A stretch of 64,000 bases of DNA, from positions 1-64,000 of IMG/VR virus record IMGVR_UViG_3300042302_000394. One strand, 5' to 3'. Shown here piece by piece: positions 2,669 through 56,792 of the stretch. A program made the position numbers and the translations under genes. How positions within the stretch are numbered: the first letter of the stretch is position 1; every line of letters starts with the position of its first letter. The notes beneath the pieces were generated by a model. That model had not been told where the DNA came from. It saw only the letters and a program-made list of their open reading frames with translations, and did not search any database.

Positions 2669-5065
2669 TTATACTGCTGTAAATGTTTTAGTCAACGGAA
2701 CTAATGTAATCGCAGTTGATATTTTGTTAGTTGAACCATATTGGAATATTGGATCAGCATACAGTACTGTGTTTGTACCAGTACCGTTGATAGCACGATT
2801 TGAACCATCTCCAACAGGTATGTTGAATGTACACACACCAAACTGCATGGATGCTGAACCACTCATTGTAATACCGTGAGTATCGGACCCTGCTCCAGTG
2901 TTGTTAAGAATAACTTCACCCATACCCCATTGTACTGAACCACTTAGGGTAATAACAGAGCCAGTGTTGGCATCCAATGAACTTCTCAACATAGTTCCTA
3001 ATGAATCGTTTGCTTGGTTAAGTACTTGTCCTGTACCGTTAGTTTCAAGATTGTTTATACTACAAAAGCCACGTTGGATATCTATTAGATATACAGAGCC
3101 ACCGGCTCTAGCCATGGTACAATCATTCATTTCCACTCTGCTACCTGTGCCAGTGTTATCCGCATAAACACAACTCTTAGTGGCGTTGCCTTGATAGCAG
3201 TATACATCGTTTAGGTAAAGTTTTGCTGGATTAGATCCAGTTAACTCGATACTGTGATACGTATCGTCGGTGCGAACGGCAATATTAAATAGGCCAAATC
3301 TATTAACGTTTATAGCGTTTGTGCCGGTGTTTGCCGGAGTGATAGTAACATGTCCCTCAATCCAAATAGGTACATGGCCGGCATCGGGAGTTTCGCCACA
3401 GATAAAAATATTTCCACGAGTCAACGCCACATTCTCTGTGATAGAACTCTTTAGGAAAATAAACTGTGGGTTATCAACGATAGAACCGTTTATGTCAATT
3501 ACTAAACTAGTATCAGCAATCCTTGCTTCAATATAGGCCAATGCCGACGCGATATTTTTGAAAGGTTTGTGTAAACTGCCATCAGCGGTGTATGTGCCCG
3601 TATTAGTTGGGTCGACAATCCATTGACTATCCGCTGTGTCGATATATACACTAACGCCTTCACTGTCGAGGATATCGCCCGGTACTGTTAGAGTACCATC
3701 ATTGCCAAATTCCCAAGTATTGCCACCAAGAACATCACCATTGGTGTAGCCACCTGTGATTACCTGTACAACTCCAGACTGTGTGGTTTCTGTGTAAGCA
3801 CGGCCGCCTGTGATTCTAACATCGCCACCATAACTACTGCCTGCGGCATTCTCAACAGTTACATCGCCGCCGGTGATTTCCACAAATCCAGGATTGCCCG
3901 TGGTAGAAGTGTTAAAGTGAGCAACATTGCCCCCTTCAATCCTAACATAGCCACCTGTGTCGTTAAGGCCTTCGCCGCCGCGTAATTTAACATCGCCACC
4001 ACTGCCGCCACCTTGGCCCCATCCTTCAGTGTTGCCGTTGGTGTCACCTCCAACTCCGCCCCAAATGTAAACATCGCCGCCTTCACCTGTGGTGCTGGTT
4101 GAGCCGTAGCCACGCTGGCCTTGGATCACAATACGTTGAGCGTTGGTGTTGTTTTCTGTAGCTGTCGGTCCTGTGACGATAACTTGATTTTCGCTGTCGT
4201 TGCTTAACTGTAGTGTTGGACCACTAAGGGTGGTAGTAACATCGTAGCCCATATTAGATTTAGTTGGCAGAGTCAAGCCTTCCGGTAGTTCTAGACTGCC
4301 ATCAAATCTAAATGTCCATGTGTAGTCAGTTGACGTGGTCTCTGTAGTAATCTCAATTCCGCTATTGGCAGGCATGTCAGCTTGGTTTACAAGTGTTAAT
4401 TGAAATTCATTGCCTCCTGATATGTAAACATCGTCTGCGGCGTCTAACGTAATATCTCTTCCTGAACGAATAGTTATATCATCGTCGCCAGTGGCCATGC
4501 CAAAGTAACTGTTACTTTCACCAACACCGTTAACTATGTCCAACCCAATGGTGTTGATGTAGTTGTAATTAAAATCAATGTCATCTATTGTTATAGGCTC
4601 TGGGTGTGCTGTAGCCAGTGTTATGGTGTACAATGGTGGATTACCACTAGAGATTACATTGGTCACTGTTGATGCGAGATCATCAGTGTTGGGATTTATC
4701 ACTAGGTTGATGTTGCTGTAATTATAGGGAAAGGCAAGATTGCCATCAAAATACTCCACCCATCTTGACAACAGATCATCGAGATACAGTCCAATATTAT
4801 CTCCCATCTGTACAGCAATAGATCCAGTGGTATAGGCAAAAGTGTGTTCACTACCGTCGTTAAAATTATCTGAATAAGTTTTTTCTGCTGTTATTTTATT
4901 ACCAGTACCACCAATGGATTCTAATCCGCTCCATACCGTTGTGCCATCACCAACTCTCAGTTGATTATTAGTAGTGTCGTAGCCTGCTTCACCTAAGGCC
5001 AGTACCGGATCGTTAGTAGTCCAATTAGCGGCTGTATCTCTACGTAGTTTGATTCTTGTTGTCAT
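2669..5065 (-). CDS. Tail fibre/spike protein with Mtd-N-like N-terminus, Gly-rich shaft and probable beta-helix C-terminus
   Basis: IKLRRDTAANW...PVLALGEAGYDT...RVGDG; GG-D-V-x-I-x-GG repeats; DGSLHKPFKNIASAL motif. Confidence 0.75.
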   Translation of the reverse strand: MTTRIKLRRDTAANWTTNDPVLALGEAGYDTTNNQLRVGDGTTVWSGLESIGGTGNKITAEKTYSDNFNDGSEHTFAYTTGSIAVQMGDNIGLYLDDLLSRWVEYFDGNLAFPYNYSNINLVINPNTDDLASTVTNVISSGNPPLYTITLATAHPEPITIDDIDFNYNYINTIGLDIVNGVGESNSYFGMATGDDDITIRSGRDITLDAADDVYISGGNEFQLTLVNQADMPANSGIEITTETTSTDYTWTFRFDGSLELPEGLTLPTKSNMGYDVTTTLSGPTLQLSNDSENQVIVTGPTATENNTNAQRIVIQGQRGYGSTSTTGEGGDVYIWGGVGGDTNGNTEGWGQGGGSGGDVKLRGGEGLNDTGGYVRIEGGNVAHFNTSTTGNPGFVEITGGDVTVENAAGSSYGGDVRITGGRAYTETTQSGVVQVITGGYTNGDVLGGNTWEFGNDGTLTVPGDILDSEGVSVYIDTADSQWIVDPTNTGTYTADGSLHKPFKNIASALAYIEARIADTSLVIDINGSIVDNPQFIFLKSSITENVALTRGNIFICGETPDAGHVPIWIEGHVTITPANTGTNAINVNRFGLFNIAVRTDDTYHSIELTGSNPAKLYLNDVYCYQGNATKSCVYADNTGTGSRVEMNDCTMARAGGSVYLIDIQRGFCSINNLETNGTGQVLNQANDSLGTMLRSSLDANTGSVITLSGSVQWGMGEVILNNTGAGSDTHGITMSGSASMQFGVCTFNIPVGDGSNRAINGTGTNTVLYADPIFQYGSTNKISTAITLVPLTKTFTAV

Positions 5066-12657: not shown

Positions 12658-13092
12658 TTAATGATTAATTCTAATATTGTTTACAGTACCATCAGTCCAA
12701 TCACTTACTCTGGCTCTAATCCAGACATAGTTTCCGGTAAAATTATAACTCTTTATATTAGTAGTTGCAGTAGTGTATTCGACGCTTGAAATGTTTTCTT
12801 CGCTAATCAGTCCTGTTGTATCAATAGACATGTTGTTTGTGCCTAGCTCAACAGAAAACCAGTCAGTGGACTGCGGTGAGGACGCAAGCGACCCCTGCAT
12901 CTCTATCTTTCCGATAAACTCGTTTATATTGATTTGGACAGTGTGAAAACCGTCGCTACCCCCGAAGTAACCGTCACCTTTTATAGGATCGCTGGCATAA
13001 ATTAGGGCAGTTGTACCTGTATTAGGATAATCTAATACTACTGTACTGGATGAATTGACGTTGAACGTTAAACTTTGGCTTAGTGATGGCAT
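12658..13092 (-). CDS. Putative virion structural protein
   Basis: GDGYFGGSDGFHT...FTGNYVWIRA beta-rich protein; TAAATA 8 nt upstream. Confidence 0.55.
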   Translation of the reverse strand: MPSLSQSLTFNVNSSSTVVLDYPNTGTTALIYASDPIKGDGYFGGSDGFHTVQININEFIGKIEMQGSLASSPQSTDWFSVELGTNNMSIDTTGLISEENISSVEYTTATTNIKSYNFTGNYVWIRARVSDWTDGTVNNIRINH

Positions 13093-13126
13093 AGTAACAA
13101 TATTTATGCTACTATACCACTTTCAC

Positions 13127-22603: not shown

Positions 22604-23527
22604 TTACTGAAGTCTTGCCAGTTTAACCAGCGTAGCCGCTAAGTTGATTTCTGCATCTGCAATCAACGTGTGATCAACTAGACCTTGTTTAATGACCAGT
22701 AGAGCCTGGTCTTTCTTTTCATCACTATCGCCAAACAGTTCGAGATTGTCATACATCCAGCGATAGATGTCTTCCATCTCTTCAGGACGGGCTTTACCAC
22801 AGAGCAATTTTCGTGCATCTTGGATTTTACCTTTCTTAAACAATTCGACCATAGCAATCTTATAGTCAGCCCCACCGCTATCACCTGTAGTGGGTGCAGC
22901 TAACACATTATCTTCTGTTACATTTTGTTGTACTAGGTTAATACACTTACGAAGATCTGGGTAAGCAGTTTTAACATAGGTGTCAAGTGTGTCAAGATCA
23001 AAGTCAATATTCTCAGTTACTAAGATTGTAGCGACCCGAGCAGTGAATTCCGTTTGGTCGGTCTTCTCCACATGAAAACCCTGGCAACGACTATGCAGTG
23101 CAGGAATAATTTTATTCTTATAGTTGCAAGTTAAAATAAATCTTGCTGTATTAGAATAAGTTTCCATTAGCCCTCGCAAAATAGCCTGTGCGTTAATGGA
23201 CAAATAATCAGCTTCGTCTAATAGCACAACCTTAAACGGACCAAATGGGATCATTTGTACGAAGTTTGTAATCTTATGGCGTACATTGTCGACATCGTTA
23301 TCTCGACTAGCGTTAATTTCCAATACATCAAATTCTTCAATACCTAGCTCGTTTAATAGAACTTTTGCCAATGTAGTCTTACCAATACCAGCTGCACCAC
23401 TTAGCAACAAGTGCGGAATGCTACCCTCCTTGATCCATGACTCAACCTGCCGCTTTTGTGAAGCATCTCGAAATACATAGTCTTCAACCTTTTTAGGTCG
23501 GTACTTTTCTACCCATAGTTCTTTCAT
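22604..23527 (-). CDS. Clamp loader small subunit (RFC / T4 gp44-like AAA+)
   Basis: LWVEKYRP, GAAGIGKT, INAS, LDEAD, SRC motifs. Confidence 0.93.
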   Translation of the reverse strand: MKELWVEKYRPKKVEDYVFRDASQKRQVESWIKEGSIPHLLLSGAAGIGKTTLAKVLLNELGIEEFDVLEINASRDNDVDNVRHKITNFVQMIPFGPFKVVLLDEADYLSINAQAILRGLMETYSNTARFILTCNYKNKIIPALHSRCQGFHVEKTDQTEFTARVATILVTENIDFDLDTLDTYVKTAYPDLRKCINLVQQNVTEDNVLAAPTTGDSGGADYKIAMVELFKKGKIQDARKLLCGKARPEEMEDIYRWMYDNLELFGDSDEKKDQALLVIKQGLVDHTLIADAEINLAATLVKLARLQ

Positions 23528-24983: not shown

Positions 24984-25218
24984 CTTTAAGATAACTTATA
25001 ATTTTTTTCTGTTCTTGTTCATTGAGCCACTCTGCTTCAGTGCTTCCAAAGTTGGGACACATTTTCATCATGTCGTCTAAGAACCATTTTAACTGATATA
25101 GATCCTGTTTAACACCCCAAGCAATGAATCCGTCGTTGCGAGCGTTAGAGCATTCTGAAACTGCTGCTCTAACCTGTTGGAATGTTTCTATAATATTGTA
25201 TGAATGTTTGTGGCCCAT
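24970..25218 (-). CDS. Hypothetical protein (likely leaderless start MGHKHS at 25218)
   Basis: ATG 6 nt after a -10 box; the ORF-track extension runs through a terminator. Confidence 0.6.
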   Translation of the reverse strand: MGHKHSYNIIETFQQVRAAVSECSNARNDGFIAWGVKQDLYQLKWFLDDMMKMCPNFGSTEAEWLNEQEQKKIISYLKDDIQ

Positions 25219-25224
25219 ATAGAT

Positions 25225-25260
25225 AGTATAGAGGTAAAAAAAGGGCCCGTCAAGACCCTT
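25225..25260 (-). terminator. Intrinsic terminator whose loop is the -35 box of the next promoter
   Basis: AAGGGTC-TTGACG-GGCCCTT-TTTTT; TTGACG, 17 nt, TATACT (25225-30). Confidence 0.75.
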
Positions 25261-25276
25261 ATTCCCCAATATCTTG

Positions 25277-25657
25277 TTAGATTCCCGGGATATTAAAGTT
25301 TACATTCGAACCTGCTCCGATAGTTTTTCGAATATCTACATCGTCTGGTCTTTCTTCTGCACTCATCAAAATAGCAGTATTATCTACTCGGCGTAGCTCA
25401 ATAATGTTTCCATCTTCTTGTTCTACTTCAAAAGTTCGCGTCCATCTACCATGTTCGACACATATCCAGTCCCCTACAGATACTTCGTTCTGCTCTGGAC
25501 CAATGGCCCATACCCGGCCCCATCTCGGCTTAACGCCTCGAGACTTTCCATTGTCTGATTGAATTACAATACCCGATGCAGTTTTTTGTACACCGAAATC
25601 CATATCAGAAACAATTACGTGATCTCTGATTGGGCGAATTTTGCCTTTAGTTACCAT
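25277..25657 (-). CDS. groES: GroES/Cpn10-like co-chaperonin
   Basis: IRPIRDHVIV, TASGIVI mobile loop, GRVWAIGP, VGD. Confidence 0.85.
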   Translation of the reverse strand: MVTKGKIRPIRDHVIVSDMDFGVQKTASGIVIQSDNGKSRGVKPRWGRVWAIGPEQNEVSVGDWICVEHGRWTRTFEVEQEDGNIIELRRVDNTAILMSAEERPDDVDIRKTIGAGSNVNFNIPGI

Positions 25658-25927
25658 TTATTCTCCAGTAGTTTTTGTTTTATTAGATGCAACAATACCT
25701 GATTGTGCTTGTTTAACTTTAGAAGATTCTGGAATTGCTTTAGGGTTGTTTTCATAATACTCAGCAATAACTTCTTCGCGTTTGCGAACAATTTTTCCAC
25801 CTGGGCCTAATTCGTCCCCTCTTGCATTTACTCTTGCGTTGCCGATAGCAGGCATAAGTTCATTTTGCGTCATGAGCTTATCCATGTCTACTTCTTTACC
25901 CTGCATTGTTTTATACACTCTTCCCAT
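25658..25927 (-). CDS. Hypothetical phage protein
   Basis: VNARGDELGPGG motif; strong SD. Confidence 0.65.
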   Translation of the reverse strand: MGRVYKTMQGKEVDMDKLMTQNELMPAIGNARVNARGDELGPGGKIVRKREEVIAEYYENNPKAIPESSKVKQAQSGIVASNKTKTTGE

Positions 25928-25937
25928 ATCTATCTCC

Positions 25938-26456
25938 TTATTTTAGGAATTCTTTTATATCTAGATCGTATTTAATGCTATCAATTCGGTGAACTCCGAT
26001 AAGATATAACACATAGCTTGCTACACTACTTCCACGACCGACTCCCCACACGATTTTATTCTCTCGCATAGTGTCTACTAAGTATTTAAGGTAGAACAAC
26101 AAATCAAACATGCCATGTTGGATAAAAAGTAGTAGTTCTTGATCTACTCTTGCACGTTGTTGTTCTGTAGTGCATCGATCATACAACCAATCGACTATAG
26201 GAAACTCACTGCATTCTTTGGGCATAAACCAAGTGCATTGATTTGCTTCATCAAAAAATGCCACATCTTCTTGGGGTTGCTGCCACTCTTGTAGTGGAAC
26301 AAGGTTGTCTTTGTTAGTGTCGACAGCAGTATTGAACTGAACTACTGTGTTGCTATCGAGGTAGACGTTTTGTAAACTTTTGAGTTTGCCCGAATACAAG
26401 TGTTCAAATAGTTCACTAGGATCTAGAAAGACGGCACCGTATTCATTGGTATTCAT
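25938..26456 (-). CDS. DNA polymerase III alpha (DnaE)-like fragment (N-terminal half of palm; likely start 26456)
   Basis: RVDQEL...YLVDTMRENKIVWGVGRGSSVASYVLYLIGVHRID...EFLK aligns by eye with DnaE GPGRGSxAGSLVAYxLxITxxDP...ERFL. Confidence 0.85.
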   Translation of the reverse strand: MNTNEYGAVFLDPSELFEHLYSGKLKSLQNVYLDSNTVVQFNTAVDTNKDNLVPLQEWQQPQEDVAFFDEANQCTWFMPKECSEFPIVDWLYDRCTTEQQRARVDQELLLFIQHGMFDLLFYLKYLVDTMRENKIVWGVGRGSSVASYVLYLIGVHRIDSIKYDLDIKEFLK

Positions 26457-26462
26457 ATTAAC

Positions 26463-26492
26463 ATTATACGCACCTACTGCATACAATGTCAA
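26463..26492 (-). promoter_or_regulatory. Sigma70-type promoter; -35 contains the upstream stop codon
   Basis: TTGACA, 18 nt, TATAAT, 6 nt, ATG. Confidence 0.7.
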
Positions 26493-26731
26493 TTATCTAC
26501 GTTAATAAAATCGTCTAAATTCTTATTTTGATTTGCCAACTTTTGATTGGCTTTGATGTGACGGGTAGACTGCTCGGCTTTGTATGCTTCGAGTATTACT
26601 GAAATTTGGTTGCATACTGCGCCCTGTCCGAATCTAGCAGCCAAGAAGTACTTTTTCATTAACTCGGTAATCTTATTGTCGATATCTTCGTTTTTCAACG
26701 TAGACAAATCTGGTAATAACGGATTAAACAT
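26489..26731 (-). CDS. Hypothetical protein (start MFNPLLP at 26731)
   Basis: TAATG coupling to the upstream gene. Confidence 0.6.
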   Translation of the reverse strand: MFNPLLPDLSTLKNEDIDNKITELMKKYFLAARFGQGAVCNQISVILEAYKAEQSTRHIKANQKLANQNKNLDDFINVDN

Positions 26732-27126
26732 TATGATAACGTAACTGAGGTACCAGTAAATGCATACCATGTGCCGCTATGATAATATGCAGGTCTATTG
26801 TATGCTGCGTCTGCAACAAATACCAATGTTCCGTTTTCTACATTTCCGGTATCAGTTAACGCAGATAGCTCGCTTAGACTATAATTTTTTAATACAATTG
26901 AACAATCTACTAAGGTTGCTTTTTTAATTTCATTTCCACCAAAATTATTTGAGCTAGATAGACTTACTAAGTTTACCTGAAGGTTGGAAATTTCTTCTCC
27001 TGTTGTAGACAGTGCTGATTGAATATTAGAAAAGTTAGTTCTAAAACCCTGAGAATCGTTATCAGATCCAGGAACTGGATAGTTGATGTTTATTAAATTG
27101 CTATAATCTGTAATAGTACTTGCCAC
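26731..27126 (-). CDS. Putative tail/baseplate-associated protein
   Basis: YPVPGSDNDSQGFRTNFSNI motif; paralogous to the adjacent gene. Confidence 0.6.
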   Translation of the reverse strand: MASTITDYSNLININYPVPGSDNDSQGFRTNFSNIQSALSTTGEEISNLQVNLVSLSSSNNFGGNEIKKATLVDCSIVLKNYSLSELSALTDTGNVENGTLVFVADAAYNRPAYYHSGTWYAFTGTSVTLS

Positions 27127-27138
27127 AATTAACTCCTG

Positions 27139-27396
27139 TTAAGATGAAGTGTAACTTTTTAATACAATGCTACAATTCACAATAGTTGCATTAGTGACGG
27201 TGTTATCGTTAAAGTTATTATTATCAGTTAAGAACACTCCGTTTGTTTTTAATGCATTAATTTCTCTATTAGCAATTTCTATGGAAGTTTTGATATTAGA
27301 AAAATTATCACGGAATTTTTGAAGGTCGTTGTCTGCACCCTGTACAGGGAAATTAATGTCAATTAAATTACTATAATTTGTGATAGTGCTAGTCAA
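27139..27396 (-). CDS. Shorter tandem paralog of 26731-27126 (TTG start)
   Basis: STITNYSNLIDINFPV.GADND...FRDNFSNI...CSIVLK shared; GGAG SD; TATAAATA upstream. Confidence 0.6.
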   Translation of the reverse strand: MTSTITNYSNLIDINFPVQGADNDLQKFRDNFSNIKTSIEIANREINALKTNGVFLTDNNNFNDNTVTNATIVNCSIVLKSYTSS

Positions 27397-27433
27397 GATT
27401 CAACTCCAGTGATGCTATATTTATAGACAAAAC

Positions 27434-30400
27434 TCACTTGAGTTTATTTTTAAGTTCTTTAACTTCTTTAGATAATTCTTTAACAGCTTCAATTAAAAGT
27501 GGCACTAGTTTTTCATACTTGACAGCTAGATATCCGTTGGTTCTTGTAGCAACAATTTCTGGTAAAATTGCTTCAATTTCTTGAGCAATAACACCTATGT
27601 CGTGTTTTCTTACAAAGAAATCATCTTCTCCACCACGACTTTCAATATATGAATCTGTCCAGTCAAAGCGTACACCCCTAATTTGTTCAAGCATTTCGAG
27701 AGGGTTGCTTAATGATTGTACATTTTCTTTTAGTCTAGCATCAGATGAGTAGTAAGCAGTGATTTCGTTTTCTGCCCTGATTTCACCAACTGCCCCGCTG
27801 TACCAACCACTTCCTACTGACAGTGTAGTAACAGTAATTGTACTTTGATATGCTGGTGCCGCCGCACCTCGACTTACTGCAATTTGACCTATAGAGCCCG
27901 GACCGTAGAAAGCAGTTGTATCAGGAGCTGATTGATAAGGAACTTGACCAGCAGTACCACCTGCTAAGTTTGTAGAATTACCTACAGTAACTGTGCTAGG
28001 TGCTTGCCATGTAGCAGTGCTCGAACCCGCAGTTAACACATATCCGTTAACACCTATTGGAATAAATGCTGTTCTTCCAGGACCGCTTTGGATAGGAATG
28101 CTGCCAGCGGTACCACCTGCTAGGTTAGTTGCAGTTGTAGAATTACCTACAGTAACTGTGCTAGGTGCTTGCCATGTAGCAGTCGTTGCTCCGGCTGTTA
28201 ATACATGTCCAGCTGTTCCTAGAGTAATAAATGCAGTACGTCCCGGTGCGCTTTGAATAGGCATTGCACCTTGTGAACCACCTGCTAGATGAGTAGCAGT
28301 GGTTGCATTGCCCGCTGTTAAATCAGTTACCTGACTCCATTGTGGTGCTGTACCTCCTGAATTAACAGTTAGTATATAACCTGCAGAGCCGATGCCTAAG
28401 AAAGTTGTAGTACCTGCACCAGTTTGGTATACAATAGAACCTGCTAATCCACCACCAACATTGTCAGTGATTGCAGATCTTCCTACATATAAAGATGAAG
28501 TTGATATAAAGGACGGACCTGTTGCACTAGCACCGTTGCTTACTAAAACTTGTCCTGCTATACCCGGGCCTACAAAACTAGTAACACCTGATGTAGTTTG
28601 GAATGGTAACTGTCCAGTAGTACCGTTTTTCAAGTTTGTAGCAGTAGTTGCTTCGCCCGCTGCAACTCCTGCTAGTGTTTCCCAGCGAGGACCACTAGCA
28701 CCAGCGACCAGTACATAACCTAATGCGCCCAGTGATAAAAATACTGTACTGTTGGCAGCATTTTGATAAGGAAGTGATCCAGCACTACCACCTACTAGGT
28801 CGTCTGCTAAAGTTGATCGTCCAACATATATACTACTTGTGTTAGTAAACACCGGACCAGTTGATGTGGTTCCTGCACTCACTAGCAGTTGTCCTGCTGT
28901 TCCTGGGCCAAAGAAACTAGTCAATCCAGGGCTAGTTTGGAATGGAACTTGTCCTGTAGTACCGTTCTTCAAGTTAGTTGCAGTGGTTGCTTCACCTGTA
29001 GCAATACCACTTAGTGATGCCCATTGAGGTGCAGTTGCACCTGCGGTTAACACATAACCGTTAGTGCCTAGAGGTAAAAATACTGTGCTGTTAGCACCAT
29101 CTTGATAGACTAAACCACCTGCACCACCACCGACGATGTCATCTGCTAGTACCGCTCTACCTACGTAGATGTTTGATGTGGAAACAAATTTAGGACCAGT
29201 TGCACTTGCACCGTCACTGGTTAATATTTCACCCGCTGTACCTGGACCAAAGAAACTAGTGTTATGAGGTGCTGTCTGGAATGGAACTTGTCCCGTAGTA
29301 CCGTTCCTTAAATTAGTAGACGAATTAGCACTTGATATAGATCCAGAAACAGTTGCGTATAATGTTCCGCCTACATACAAATCTCCACCAATACCTGCAC
29401 CACCTCCGACAATCAATGCACCGGTATTAGTTGATGTTGCATTTGTAGCATTGTTAGTTTGTATAATATCATCTGTGACTATTAACGTTGTTGTAACAGT
29501 TGTTAATTGAATTGTTAATTTTTGAGCAACAATTTCACCACCAACATACAAATCGCCACCGATACCGACACCCCCTACAACTCTTAGAGCACCGGTTTGC
29601 GTAGAAGTTGCAATAGTTGTGTTGGTTATAGTTGACGCAGGTGTAGTTAGTATACCGTTGTTTGTATTAAACACGAGGTTACCACTTGCACCTAATGTTG
29701 CATAAGCACTAGCACCGGCAACCATTGTCAAGTATCTTAACGGAGTTGCTTCGCTGGTGCCCAAGCTGGTAACGTATGTTTTTTCACTTTCAGCAGATTT
29801 ACCTACAGATATTGTAGTTGTTGAAACAAAACTTGCAGTATTTGTCTGAGCTTGTAGTAAACTTCCTGCTGCACCGGCTGATATAAATGTAGTAACACTG
29901 GTTGCAGATTGAATAGGGATCTCGCCTGCTGCACCGTTGTTTATGTTATTTGTGTCTGTAGGGCCAGATGGACCAGATGGACCAGATGGCCCAGTAACAC
30001 CTTGCGGTCCTTGCGGACCGGGAGGTCCTGAAGGTCCTTGAACGCCTTGCGGTCCTTGTGGACCTGTAGCACCCCTAGGTCCTTGAACGCCTTGCGGTCC
30101 TTGTGGACCTTGCGGACCAGTAACGCCCTGTGGTCCTTGAACTCCTTGTGGTCCCTGCGGGCCTTGAACGCCTTGTGGTCCTTGGGGTCCCTGAACTCCC
30201 TGTGGTCCTTGTGGACCTGTAACACCTTGTGGTCCCTGTGGACCAGTGGCACCTATTTGATTTCCTAACCAAGTTCTAACTCTTGCTGGTTCGAGTTGTT
30301 GCTCAACACCGTCGTGCGCTACAATGAATACCGTTTGGTAATCAGTAGGATTCGTTAAGTTAGTCGATAAGACTTCAGAAAGAGATGCTCTAATAGACAT
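27434..30400 (-). CDS. Long tail fibre with collagen segment, ~55-aa NLxxGxxGxxPxQ repeats and C-terminal intramolecular chaperone (peptidase S74)
   Basis: [10 protein letters not shown]...[13 protein letters not shown]...[15 protein letters not shown]. Confidence 0.85.
29960..30254 (-). repeat. Collagen-like GPQ/GVQ/GPS repeats
   Basis: Near-tandem 9- and 27-nt repeats. Confidence 0.9.
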
Positions 30401-55994: not shown

Positions 55995-56792
55995 TTACTT
56001 AGGCATCATCAATGCATTGAAGTTGCTTGGAACAACAATGGTCTGTACTTGTCCATTCTTGATACCTTCTGAGATATTCAACATGGCTTGTGCCTGCATG
56101 AATGCAATACTAGCACCTGAGTTATTTGCAAGTGCTGCCATACGACGGCTTTCAGCTTCGGCAGTCTTAACTTCAACTTCCTTCTGCTTGAGTTCGTTCT
56201 TACTACGAACCAATGCGTTAGCCGACTCAACAACAGTATCACTTGGCAGTACATTACGAATCATAACCTGACTGATCATAATGGAACCGTCCAACTTTTC
56301 TTCAGAAAGGTTGCGAACAATTTCTTCCTTAATGTAGTTTTCCATGTCAGTGCGGTTGTCTGCCATATCCAATGCTTCGTACTTTCGTGCGGCTTTGTAG
56401 ATAGCATTACGAGCATTCTGAACCACATAGTTGTACATCACATAAGTGTCACCTTTGAATTCAGCGTGGAACGATTTGTTCTTGGTTGAATAAAGTTCGG
56501 CAACATTCTGTGAATTGATGTTGTAAACAACTACAGCATCGAAGTCTTTCATGGTTGAGTTGTCCTTGGCCACCGGAGTCATATTCTCCAAGACCACGTT
56601 AACATCCTTGACCGGGAATGTAAGCACATCACCGATGAATGTCTGATTGAACGAACCAGGCAACAACTCACCTGGTTGTACCTGTTTATCAAAACCAACT
56701 CGCACACCGACCTCACCAGTCTCAATACGAGTACAAGCACTAGTTAGAGCAACTGCGGTCAAAACCAAACCAACTTTAATAAAACGCATCAT
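55995..56792 (-). CDS. SPFH/band-7 family lipoprotein
   Basis: Lipobox TSAC; RIETGEVGV; coiled-coil AEAE tail. Confidence 0.85.
   Translation of the reverse strand: MMRFIKVGLVLTAVALTSACTRIETGEVGVRVGFDKQVQPGELLPGSFNQTFIGDVLTFPVKDVNVVLENMTPVAKDNSTMKDFDAVVVYNINSQNVAELYSTKNKSFHAEFKGDTYVMYNYVVQNARNAIYKAARKYEALDMADNRTDMENYIKEEIVRNLSEEKLDGSIMISQVMIRNVLPSDTVVESANALVRSKNELKQKEVEVKTAEAESRRMAALANNSGASIAFMQAQAMLNISEGIKNGQVQTIVVPSNFNALMMPK

Follow-up and report, generated by a model that had tools for sequence, protein, structure and literature searches.

Introduction

A split minimal DNA polymerase III alpha subunit was described in the group 2.2 jumbo phages by Iyer, Anantharaman, Krishnan, Burroughs and Aravind (2021; Viruses 13:63, PMC7824862), who distinguished an N-terminal NTP-binding subdomain from a C-terminal subdomain that binds Mg2+ and template (their sections 3.4.1 and 3.5, Fig. 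3b) and who also reported a family B polymerase in these phages. Such a split enzyme is typical of group 2.2, the Rak2-like, T4-related jumbo phages. Earlier genome papers had listed the first of the two genes as a "truncated" alpha subunit, e.g., CBB_328 (172 aa) and Atu_ph07 gp316, and Weinheimer & Aylward (2022; PMC9123017) named PF07733 as the signature gene of the marine jumbo-phage cluster PGC_A. Our literature search found no experimental work, biochemical or genetic, on the split enzyme, which is already known as a computational prediction and as families in PHROGs.

Here we analyze a further member of this group, found in the window, by which we mean a stretch of 64,000 nucleotides (positions 1 to 64,000) of the IMG/VR virus record IMGVR_UViG_3300042302_000394. 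A preliminary description, made from the letters of the window, had read an open reading frame at this locus as half of a DnaE palm whose catalytic half would be encoded by a separate gene. Its main inference of a split polymerase is supported, but had already been published (Iyer et al. 2021). What we add is the partner family with its invariant catalytic residues, the reciprocal co-occurrence of the two genes, a junction placed at 393|396 of E. coli DnaE, a confident model of the heterodimer, and the replication-module context of both genes. We refer to the NTP-binding half as the N-unit and to the catalytic half as the C-unit. The window copy has the same length, the same EFLK end, the same GRGS motif and the same neighbourhood as Atu_ph07 gp316, GAP32_323, CBB_328 and MIJ3_00130, and nothing of substance sets it apart from that family beyond its source, an uncultivated lake-water phage.

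The phage enzyme resembles DnaE and PolC (PDB 2hnh, 5lew, 3e0d and 3f2b) in its palm fold, its GRGS loop and its three catalytic aspartates, the last being carried in the phage by the partner. In contrast to DnaE with its 1160 aa, it is made of two chains of about 360-370 aa in total, lacks the PHP, thumb, beta-binding, OB and tau-binding domains, and has fingers pruned by about half. The N-unit also differs from DnaE in having an extra, family-specific N-terminal region of 70 aa, and in carrying an invariant Glu at the position of E. coli R390, a residue which we take to be a triphosphate contact in DnaE.

Two other divided C-family polymerases invite comparison. Cyanobacterial DnaE-n and DnaE-c likewise supply one such polymerase from two distant genes. 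There the protein is divided elsewhere along its length and splicing restores a single chain. The cyanobacterial split has inteins, whereas the phage N-unit ends flush at EFLK and the C-unit starts 1-8 aa before DxDxD, so that no room is left for intein halves. The DnaE of Cellulophaga phage phiST (gp044 + gp045; locus L030, 3304-6904) is closer in one respect, as its palm is interrupted where the jumbo-phage enzyme is divided, with gp044 covering positions 4-98 of PF07733 and gp045 positions 100-260. Unlike the jumbo-phage genes, gp044 and gp045 lie side by side and encode full-sized halves, the PHP domain belonging to gp044 and the finger and HhH domains to gp045. Past the break gp044 runs on for about 50 additional residues, and gp045 has about 17 residues before PDIDTDF. 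Two further families, phrog_7513 and phrog_13169 (~460 aa), also end near this break, and together with the phiST split they suggest that C-family polymerases may have been broken repeatedly at this palm loop.

Results

Structure of the N-unit gene

The N-unit gene and the features around it are as follows, all on the minus strand and in window coordinates.

22604-23527, minus: gp44/RFC-like clamp-loader ATPase, syntenic in Atu_ph07, MIJ3 and GAP32
25277-25657, minus: GroES/gp31-like co-chaperonin (Cpn10), fourth gene of the conserved cassette
25658-25927, minus: downstream small ORF, 89 aa, phrog_14844, at this position in 52/52 loci
25938-26456, minus: N-unit coding sequence (NTP-binding unit of the split minimal Pol III alpha), 172 aa, matching phrog_11127
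25938-25940, minus: N-unit stop codon, TAA
25941-26243, minus: DnaE-like first half of the palm, residues 72-172, equivalent to E. coli DnaE 276-393
26028-26039, minus: GRGS motif, residues 140-143 (ATG numbering), invariant in the N-unit family
26244-26456, minus: family-specific N-terminal region, residues 1-71, with no structural match
26463-26492, minus: sigma-70-type promoter-like site, TTGACA-18 nt-TATAAT, 12/12 matches in a promoter scan
26489-26770, minus: upstream small ORF, 93 aa, phrog_15348, at this position in 48/52 loci

The reading frame can be extended to an alternative TTG start at 26492 (25938-26492, minus; 184 aa), the TTG overlapping the TGA stop of the upstream gene. The ATG at 26456 is the start used by relatives and the point where the family alignment begins. 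The preliminary description had noted an ORF of about 172 aa with GRGS, its own promoter and a clean stop at the Shine-Dalgarno sequence of the next gene, and each of these can be read at the locus. GRGS is the G-S loop of the Pol-beta-like nucleotidyltransferase fold, the protein ends in ...YDLDIKEFLK, and its TAA is directly abutted by GGAG, the Shine-Dalgarno sequence of the next ORF (ATG at 25927). The candidate promoter is a perfect match, read from 26492 to 26463, and its -10 hexamer ends 6 nt before the ATG. As there is no Shine-Dalgarno sequence between promoter and ATG (window 26454-26492, minus), the predicted N-unit mRNA would be leaderless or nearly so.

Similar elements, TTGAC(A)-17/18 nt-TA(T/A)A(A/C)T, stand 5-12 nt before the ATG in many relatives with 35-60% protein identity (loci L055-L059, L064, L068, L069, L077 and L093, just upstream of position 3001). 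The -35 element partly coincides with the conserved Leu-Asp codons that end the upstream gene.

The N-unit belongs to a large family of fixed length

The profile of phrog_11127 (171 positions, annotated "DNA polymerase") matches the N-unit from end to end with an E-value of 1.7e-41, residues 13-184 of the TTG-start ORF aligning with profile positions 7-171 of 171. At least 8000 homologs are present in a large protein database, the best 120 all being 171-184 aa long, and an exhaustive profile search gave 467 clusters at 50% identity with E <= 1e-30. Among the best 150 of the 467 cluster representatives, lengths range over 157-196 aa, the match runs to the C-terminus, and no fusion of the N-unit to a catalytic half is found. 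Residues E107, G138, G140-S143, S147, E169 and F170 are invariant in the N-unit alignments, and the E-F-L-K/R motif is the end point of the N-unit proteins, just before the position of the DnaE DxD strand.

By tblastn, copies of about 170 aa were found in RaK2, K64-1, GAP32, 121Q, CBB, PA5oct/MIJ3, Atu_ph07, SCTP-2, XacN1 and others, these being Rak2-like jumbo phages, and the window N-unit is 35-41% identical to the proteins of isolate phages. The preliminary description had named a full-length dnaE at this locus in relatives as the finding that would speak for a recent truncation; what relatives carry here is the stand-alone gene. Comparison with relatives gives a dN/dS of 0.14 for a pair short of saturation (dS 0.17) and of 0-0.25 for more closely related pairs, values which indicate that the N-unit gene is under purifying selection. 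Independent assemblies also gave the same sequence: three other IMG/VR contigs have 0-1 differences in 661 bases at the locus, and Logan contigs from four lake-water runs of 2020-2024 cover 25000-27500 with zero letter differences or indels. Given these identical assemblies, the fixed end point and the purifying selection, we reject a truncation or assembly error. Every sampled word of a 1.2-kb stretch was also present in at least 24 lake-water and freshwater metagenome runs from 2020-2024.

The N-unit corresponds to the first half of the DnaE palm

Pfam PF07733 (DNA_pol3_alpha) matches the N-unit over profile positions 16-94 of 260 only (E 3e-12), and phmmer aligned the protein to E. coli DnaE 323-392. 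A structural comparison used an AlphaFold model built from an alignment of 41 sequences (pLDDT 87). Above Z 3 this model matched C-family polymerases only, residues 72-172 aligning with E. coli DnaE 276-393 at Z 9.7-10.7 and with M. tuberculosis DnaE1 305-413 at Z 12; residues 1-71 had no structural match in this comparison of the predicted model. The matched part has the Pol-beta-like palm with its G-S loop.

Because the alignments end at E. coli residue ~392-393, the N-unit stops just before D401/D403, two residues ahead of the catalytic Asp-x-Asp strand that carries them, and the three catalytic acidic residues of E. coli DnaE (D401, D403 and D555) are absent from the N-unit polypeptide. 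The original reading of a half palm halting before the catalytic aspartates is thus borne out, with its end at E. coli DnaE residue 393. So is the statement that the gene comes without a PHP domain, intein block or frameshifted continuation: Pfam on the N-unit returned PF07733 alone, and a read-through PF07733 search of the whole record returned the N-unit piece only.

A catalytic partner is encoded in relatives

The preliminary description had suggested looking elsewhere in the genome for a small ORF starting near a (P/S)DIDID motif. Such a gene exists in relatives, as phrog_11778, and is absent from the record of the window phage. It was recognized through the phage DnaE profile phrog_405, which gave weak but mutually consistent matches to one ORF each of MIJ3 and Atu_ph07, both about 200 aa long. 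These two C-units begin with ...(T/P)D(V/I)DID(V/F)... and carry the DnaE motifs H-x-x-G, K-x-D-x-L, R-P and F-K-K-x-H-x-x-Y; an HMM made from them detects GAP32 213271-213924 with an E-value of 3e-52. The family, phrog_11778, is about 190 aa long and annotated "DNA polymerase", and Pfam gave no match on the C-unit.

From 80 IMG/VR loci we obtained 67 distinct C-unit sequences of 185-208 aa. DxDxD follows the Met by 1-8 residues in 66 of them, and D7, D9, D11, R15, H38, G41, K70, D72, R139, P140, K142, F168, H172 and Y176 are invariant in all 67. The third catalytic Asp sits in the K-x-D motif, and the invariant positions include the finger motifs held in common with DnaE, R-P and F-K-x-x-H...Y. 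A C-unit model (pLDDT 92) aligned to C-family polymerases alone at Z 9-10 (E. coli DnaE 396-784, Taq 457-841, PolC 967-1299), the next unrelated fold reaching Z 3.5, and hhalign of the C-unit against the C-terminal part of phage DnaEs gave a probability of 95.5%. With the N-unit ending at E. coli DnaE 393 and the C-unit beginning at 396, the two are exact complements. Some 190 C-unit residues stand in place of about 390 in E. coli (396-784), which implies that the thumb and roughly half of the fingers have been lost.

Several other probes were less informative. Regular expressions for P/S-D-x-D-x-D and for H-A-G-G-like and D-F-L-G-L-like motifs in the six-frame ORFs of the record gave nothing useful; PF07733 and PF17657 searches of the record and three isolate genomes returned only the N-unit, PF17657 itself having no match in the record; no significant match came from an HMM made of four phage DnaEs, trimmed to their C-terminal parts; and phrog_11165 as a partner probe gave faint matches only. 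Two candidates in GAP32 were set aside. A weak Pfam match at 56579-56737 was judged spurious, as it overlaps a virion protein and a dCMP deaminase, and 272735-274003 (E 0.076 with the HMM of the four DnaE C-terminal parts) has no counterpart in the other genomes checked.

Genomic context of the two genes

The order of small ORF, N-unit, small ORF and GroES-like gene, with the clamp loader nearby, is common to Atu_ph07, MIJ3, GAP32 and the window, and the four-gene cassette is repeated in 48-52 of 52 loci. The C-unit lies in a block of its own, ordered phrog_11279, phrog_11758, phrog_11058, C-unit, a convergent small ORF, a protein of about 268 aa, primase and DnaB helicase; it is found upstream of the primase in 54 loci and of the DnaB helicase in 32. 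In 76/83 loci a conserved ORF of about 127 aa on the opposite strand reaches up to the 3' end of the C-unit gene or overlaps it slightly (e.g., GAP32 213908-214303, minus; C-unit loci L097-L179).

Co-occurrence and predicted complex

Both genes are present in three of three isolate genomes (GAP32, MIJ3 and Atu_ph07). Among IMG/VR records at least 90% complete, the two that carry the N-unit both hold the C-unit, as does a 326-kb record, and the three that carry the C-unit all hold the N-unit, as does a 244-kb record; co-occurrence is seen in 3/3 isolates and 5/5 such records. Shorter N-unit-bearing fragments are without the C-unit, and in complete relatives the two genes are 34-250 kb apart.

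We modelled the window N-unit together with the C-unit of a second phage, G002; the N-units of the two phages are 52% identical. The predicted complex had an ipSAE of 0.89 as against 0.01 for the best of three controls; the ipSAE mark is reached by 58/80 solved complexes and by 2/110 mismatched pairs. Three runs had at least 94% of contacts in common, with a partner pLDDT of at least 89. In the model, N-unit residues 133-146, comprising a strand and the GRGS loop, contact C-unit residues 6-13 of the DxDxD strand, residues 69-78 contact C-unit 44-47 and 66-68, and parts of the family-specific region 1-71 also fall in the predicted interface. It should be considered that the high score may in part reflect the model's memory of the single-chain DnaE fold, since DnaE has been solved as a single chain with the same arrangement. 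The prediction supports one composite active site formed by the two units, and from it we infer that the N-unit binds the C-unit. That the catalytic half would be a separate gene, and the enzyme an intein-free heterodimer, thus finds support in phrog_11778 of the relatives, in the modelled complex and in the lack of space for inteins.

The partner of the window phage

The record from which the window is taken has 207,813 bases and a CheckV completeness of 58%. Searches with the C-unit profile, with phrog_11778 and by unfiltered hmmsearch of ORFs of at least 25 aa found no C-unit in it. A 41-aa ORF at record positions 192524-192649 (C-unit profile E 0.03) was dismissed as a chance match, lying opposite a 510-aa ORF and having no adjacent fragments. 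GAP32 has the entire C-unit block, whereas in the 58%-complete record phrog_11279, phrog_11758, phrog_11058, primase and DnaB were not found, and of the block only the 268-aa family is matched, at 12658-13122 (E 3.6e-20). Because the record is without nearly all genes of the block, we infer that the window phage encodes its C-unit in the missing part, about 40%, of its genome. No family B polymerase or DnaQ-like exonuclease is recognisable in the 58%-complete record either; with these, primase and DnaB all absent, the greater part of the replication module seems to fall within the sequence that is missing.

Discussion

The analysis shows homology to DnaE, a break point that does not shift, conservation of the gene, the joint presence of both genes in relatives, and a partner family that keeps its catalytic residues. 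We consider it likely that the N-unit serves as the NTP-binding subunit in a minimal nucleotidyltransferase of the C-family (DnaE-like), a heterodimer formed without inteins. In this proposal the N-unit would supply the first helix-strand-loop-helix of a Pol-beta-like palm, including the invariant GRGS loop, whose counterpart in DnaE holds the triphosphate of the incoming nucleotide, and the C-unit would supply the DxDxD strand, the Asp of K-x-D and a heavily pruned finger domain. Docking of the halves would bring the strand and loop of GRGS up to the DxDxD strand, giving one composite active site. The product would be equivalent to E. coli DnaE 276-784 minus the thumb and about half of the fingers, and would have no PHP, beta-binding, OB or tau-binding domain.

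That both genes lie in replication modules suggests that the enzyme may make DNA in an accessory role beside the replication machinery of the phage itself, as also proposed by Iyer et al. (2021). Templated, processive synthesis is not assured, given the absent thumb, the ~190 residues that stand for E. coli 396-784 and the Glu at R390, and a templated DNA polymerase role of the modelled pair is accordingly less certain than its identity as a composite nucleotidyltransferase. We would suggest, tentatively and with more doubt than confidence, that the pair of ~360-370 aa is the smallest natural C-family core, acting either as a thumb-less DNA polymerase or as a re-purposed, non-replicative nucleotidyltransferase; in the polymerase version it may couple to the phage primase, helicase and clamp loader. 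Either activity, if true, would be the first biochemical result for the split Pol III alpha family, and the pair could then model the ancestral catalytic module of Pol III, as Iyer et al. suggested. The split enzyme, of which the N-unit is half, may in any case be the most strongly reduced of the known C-family polymerases, and the N-unit gene marks a very large and environmentally abundant clade of jumbo phages.

Other readings of the N-unit share part of this evidence. Enzymes of the Pol-beta fold are functionally versatile, and the composite site could serve a non-templated nucleotidyltransferase that adds to termini or primer ends, tails RNA or DNA, or makes a nucleotide product. The missing thumb, the deletion of about half of the palm-to-finger span, the invariant Glu in place of E. 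coli R390, and clamp-binding, OB and HhH modules that go undetected on a C-unit where Pfam is blank would all fit such an enzyme; however, the finger motifs shared with DnaE (R-P and F-K-x-x-H...Y) are kept invariant and the genes adjoin clamp loader, primase and helicase, and we regard this reading as improbable. Far less probable still is that the N-unit alone acts as a decoy or inhibitor of the host Pol III replisome, an option raised in the preliminary description. It draws on the N-unit's own lack of catalytic aspartates and on the strong sigma-70-like promoter, which the host polymerase could use early in infection. What counts against it is that every complete relative examined pairs the N-unit with a C-unit whose catalytic residues are intact, and the most conserved surface of the N-unit (GRGS, 133-146) is the one predicted to contact that C-unit. 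In addition, the regions of DnaE that bind beta, tau and epsilon are the PHP domain and the C-terminal domains, and the N-unit has none of these.

A decaying remnant of a full-length dnaE, produced by recent truncation or by misassembly, might be suspected from the partial coverage of PF07733, and the authors of the CBB genome termed their own copy "truncated". We find this scarcely credible, as length and end point are fixed over about 470 clusters at 50% identity, dN/dS is ~0.14, synteny is conserved, assemblies from 2020-2024 are identical, and among the genomes checked no relative has a full-length dnaE at the locus. The heterodimeric, composite enzyme remains our preferred reading.

The neighbours of the N-unit gene deserve comment in their own right. 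The downstream ORF (phrog_14844) belongs to a small, unrelated family, starts 10 nt past the N-unit stop and is linked to the N-unit as tightly as the GroES-like gene is; its product could act as a further partner, either with the split enzyme or with the chaperonin. The window also has a cytidylyltransferase-like protein (PF01467; 24519-24983, minus), encoded between the GroES-like gene and the clamp loader, and a gene at this position is absent from the examined cassettes of isolates. On the other side, 27434-30400 (minus) encodes a tail-fibre-like protein of 988 aa, in which collagen-type G-x-y repeats (Pfam Collagen) take up about 100 residues and a Peptidase_S74 intramolecular-chaperone domain stands at the C-terminal end. 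Two adjacent small ORFs at 26731-27126 and 27139-27396 (minus) had zero Pfam matches. Their N-termini are almost the same over about 45 residues (M-x-S-T-I-T-D/N-Y-S-N-L-I...), and they look like tandem paralogues; on the minus strand which they share with the collagen-like fibre gene, they lie directly downstream of it.
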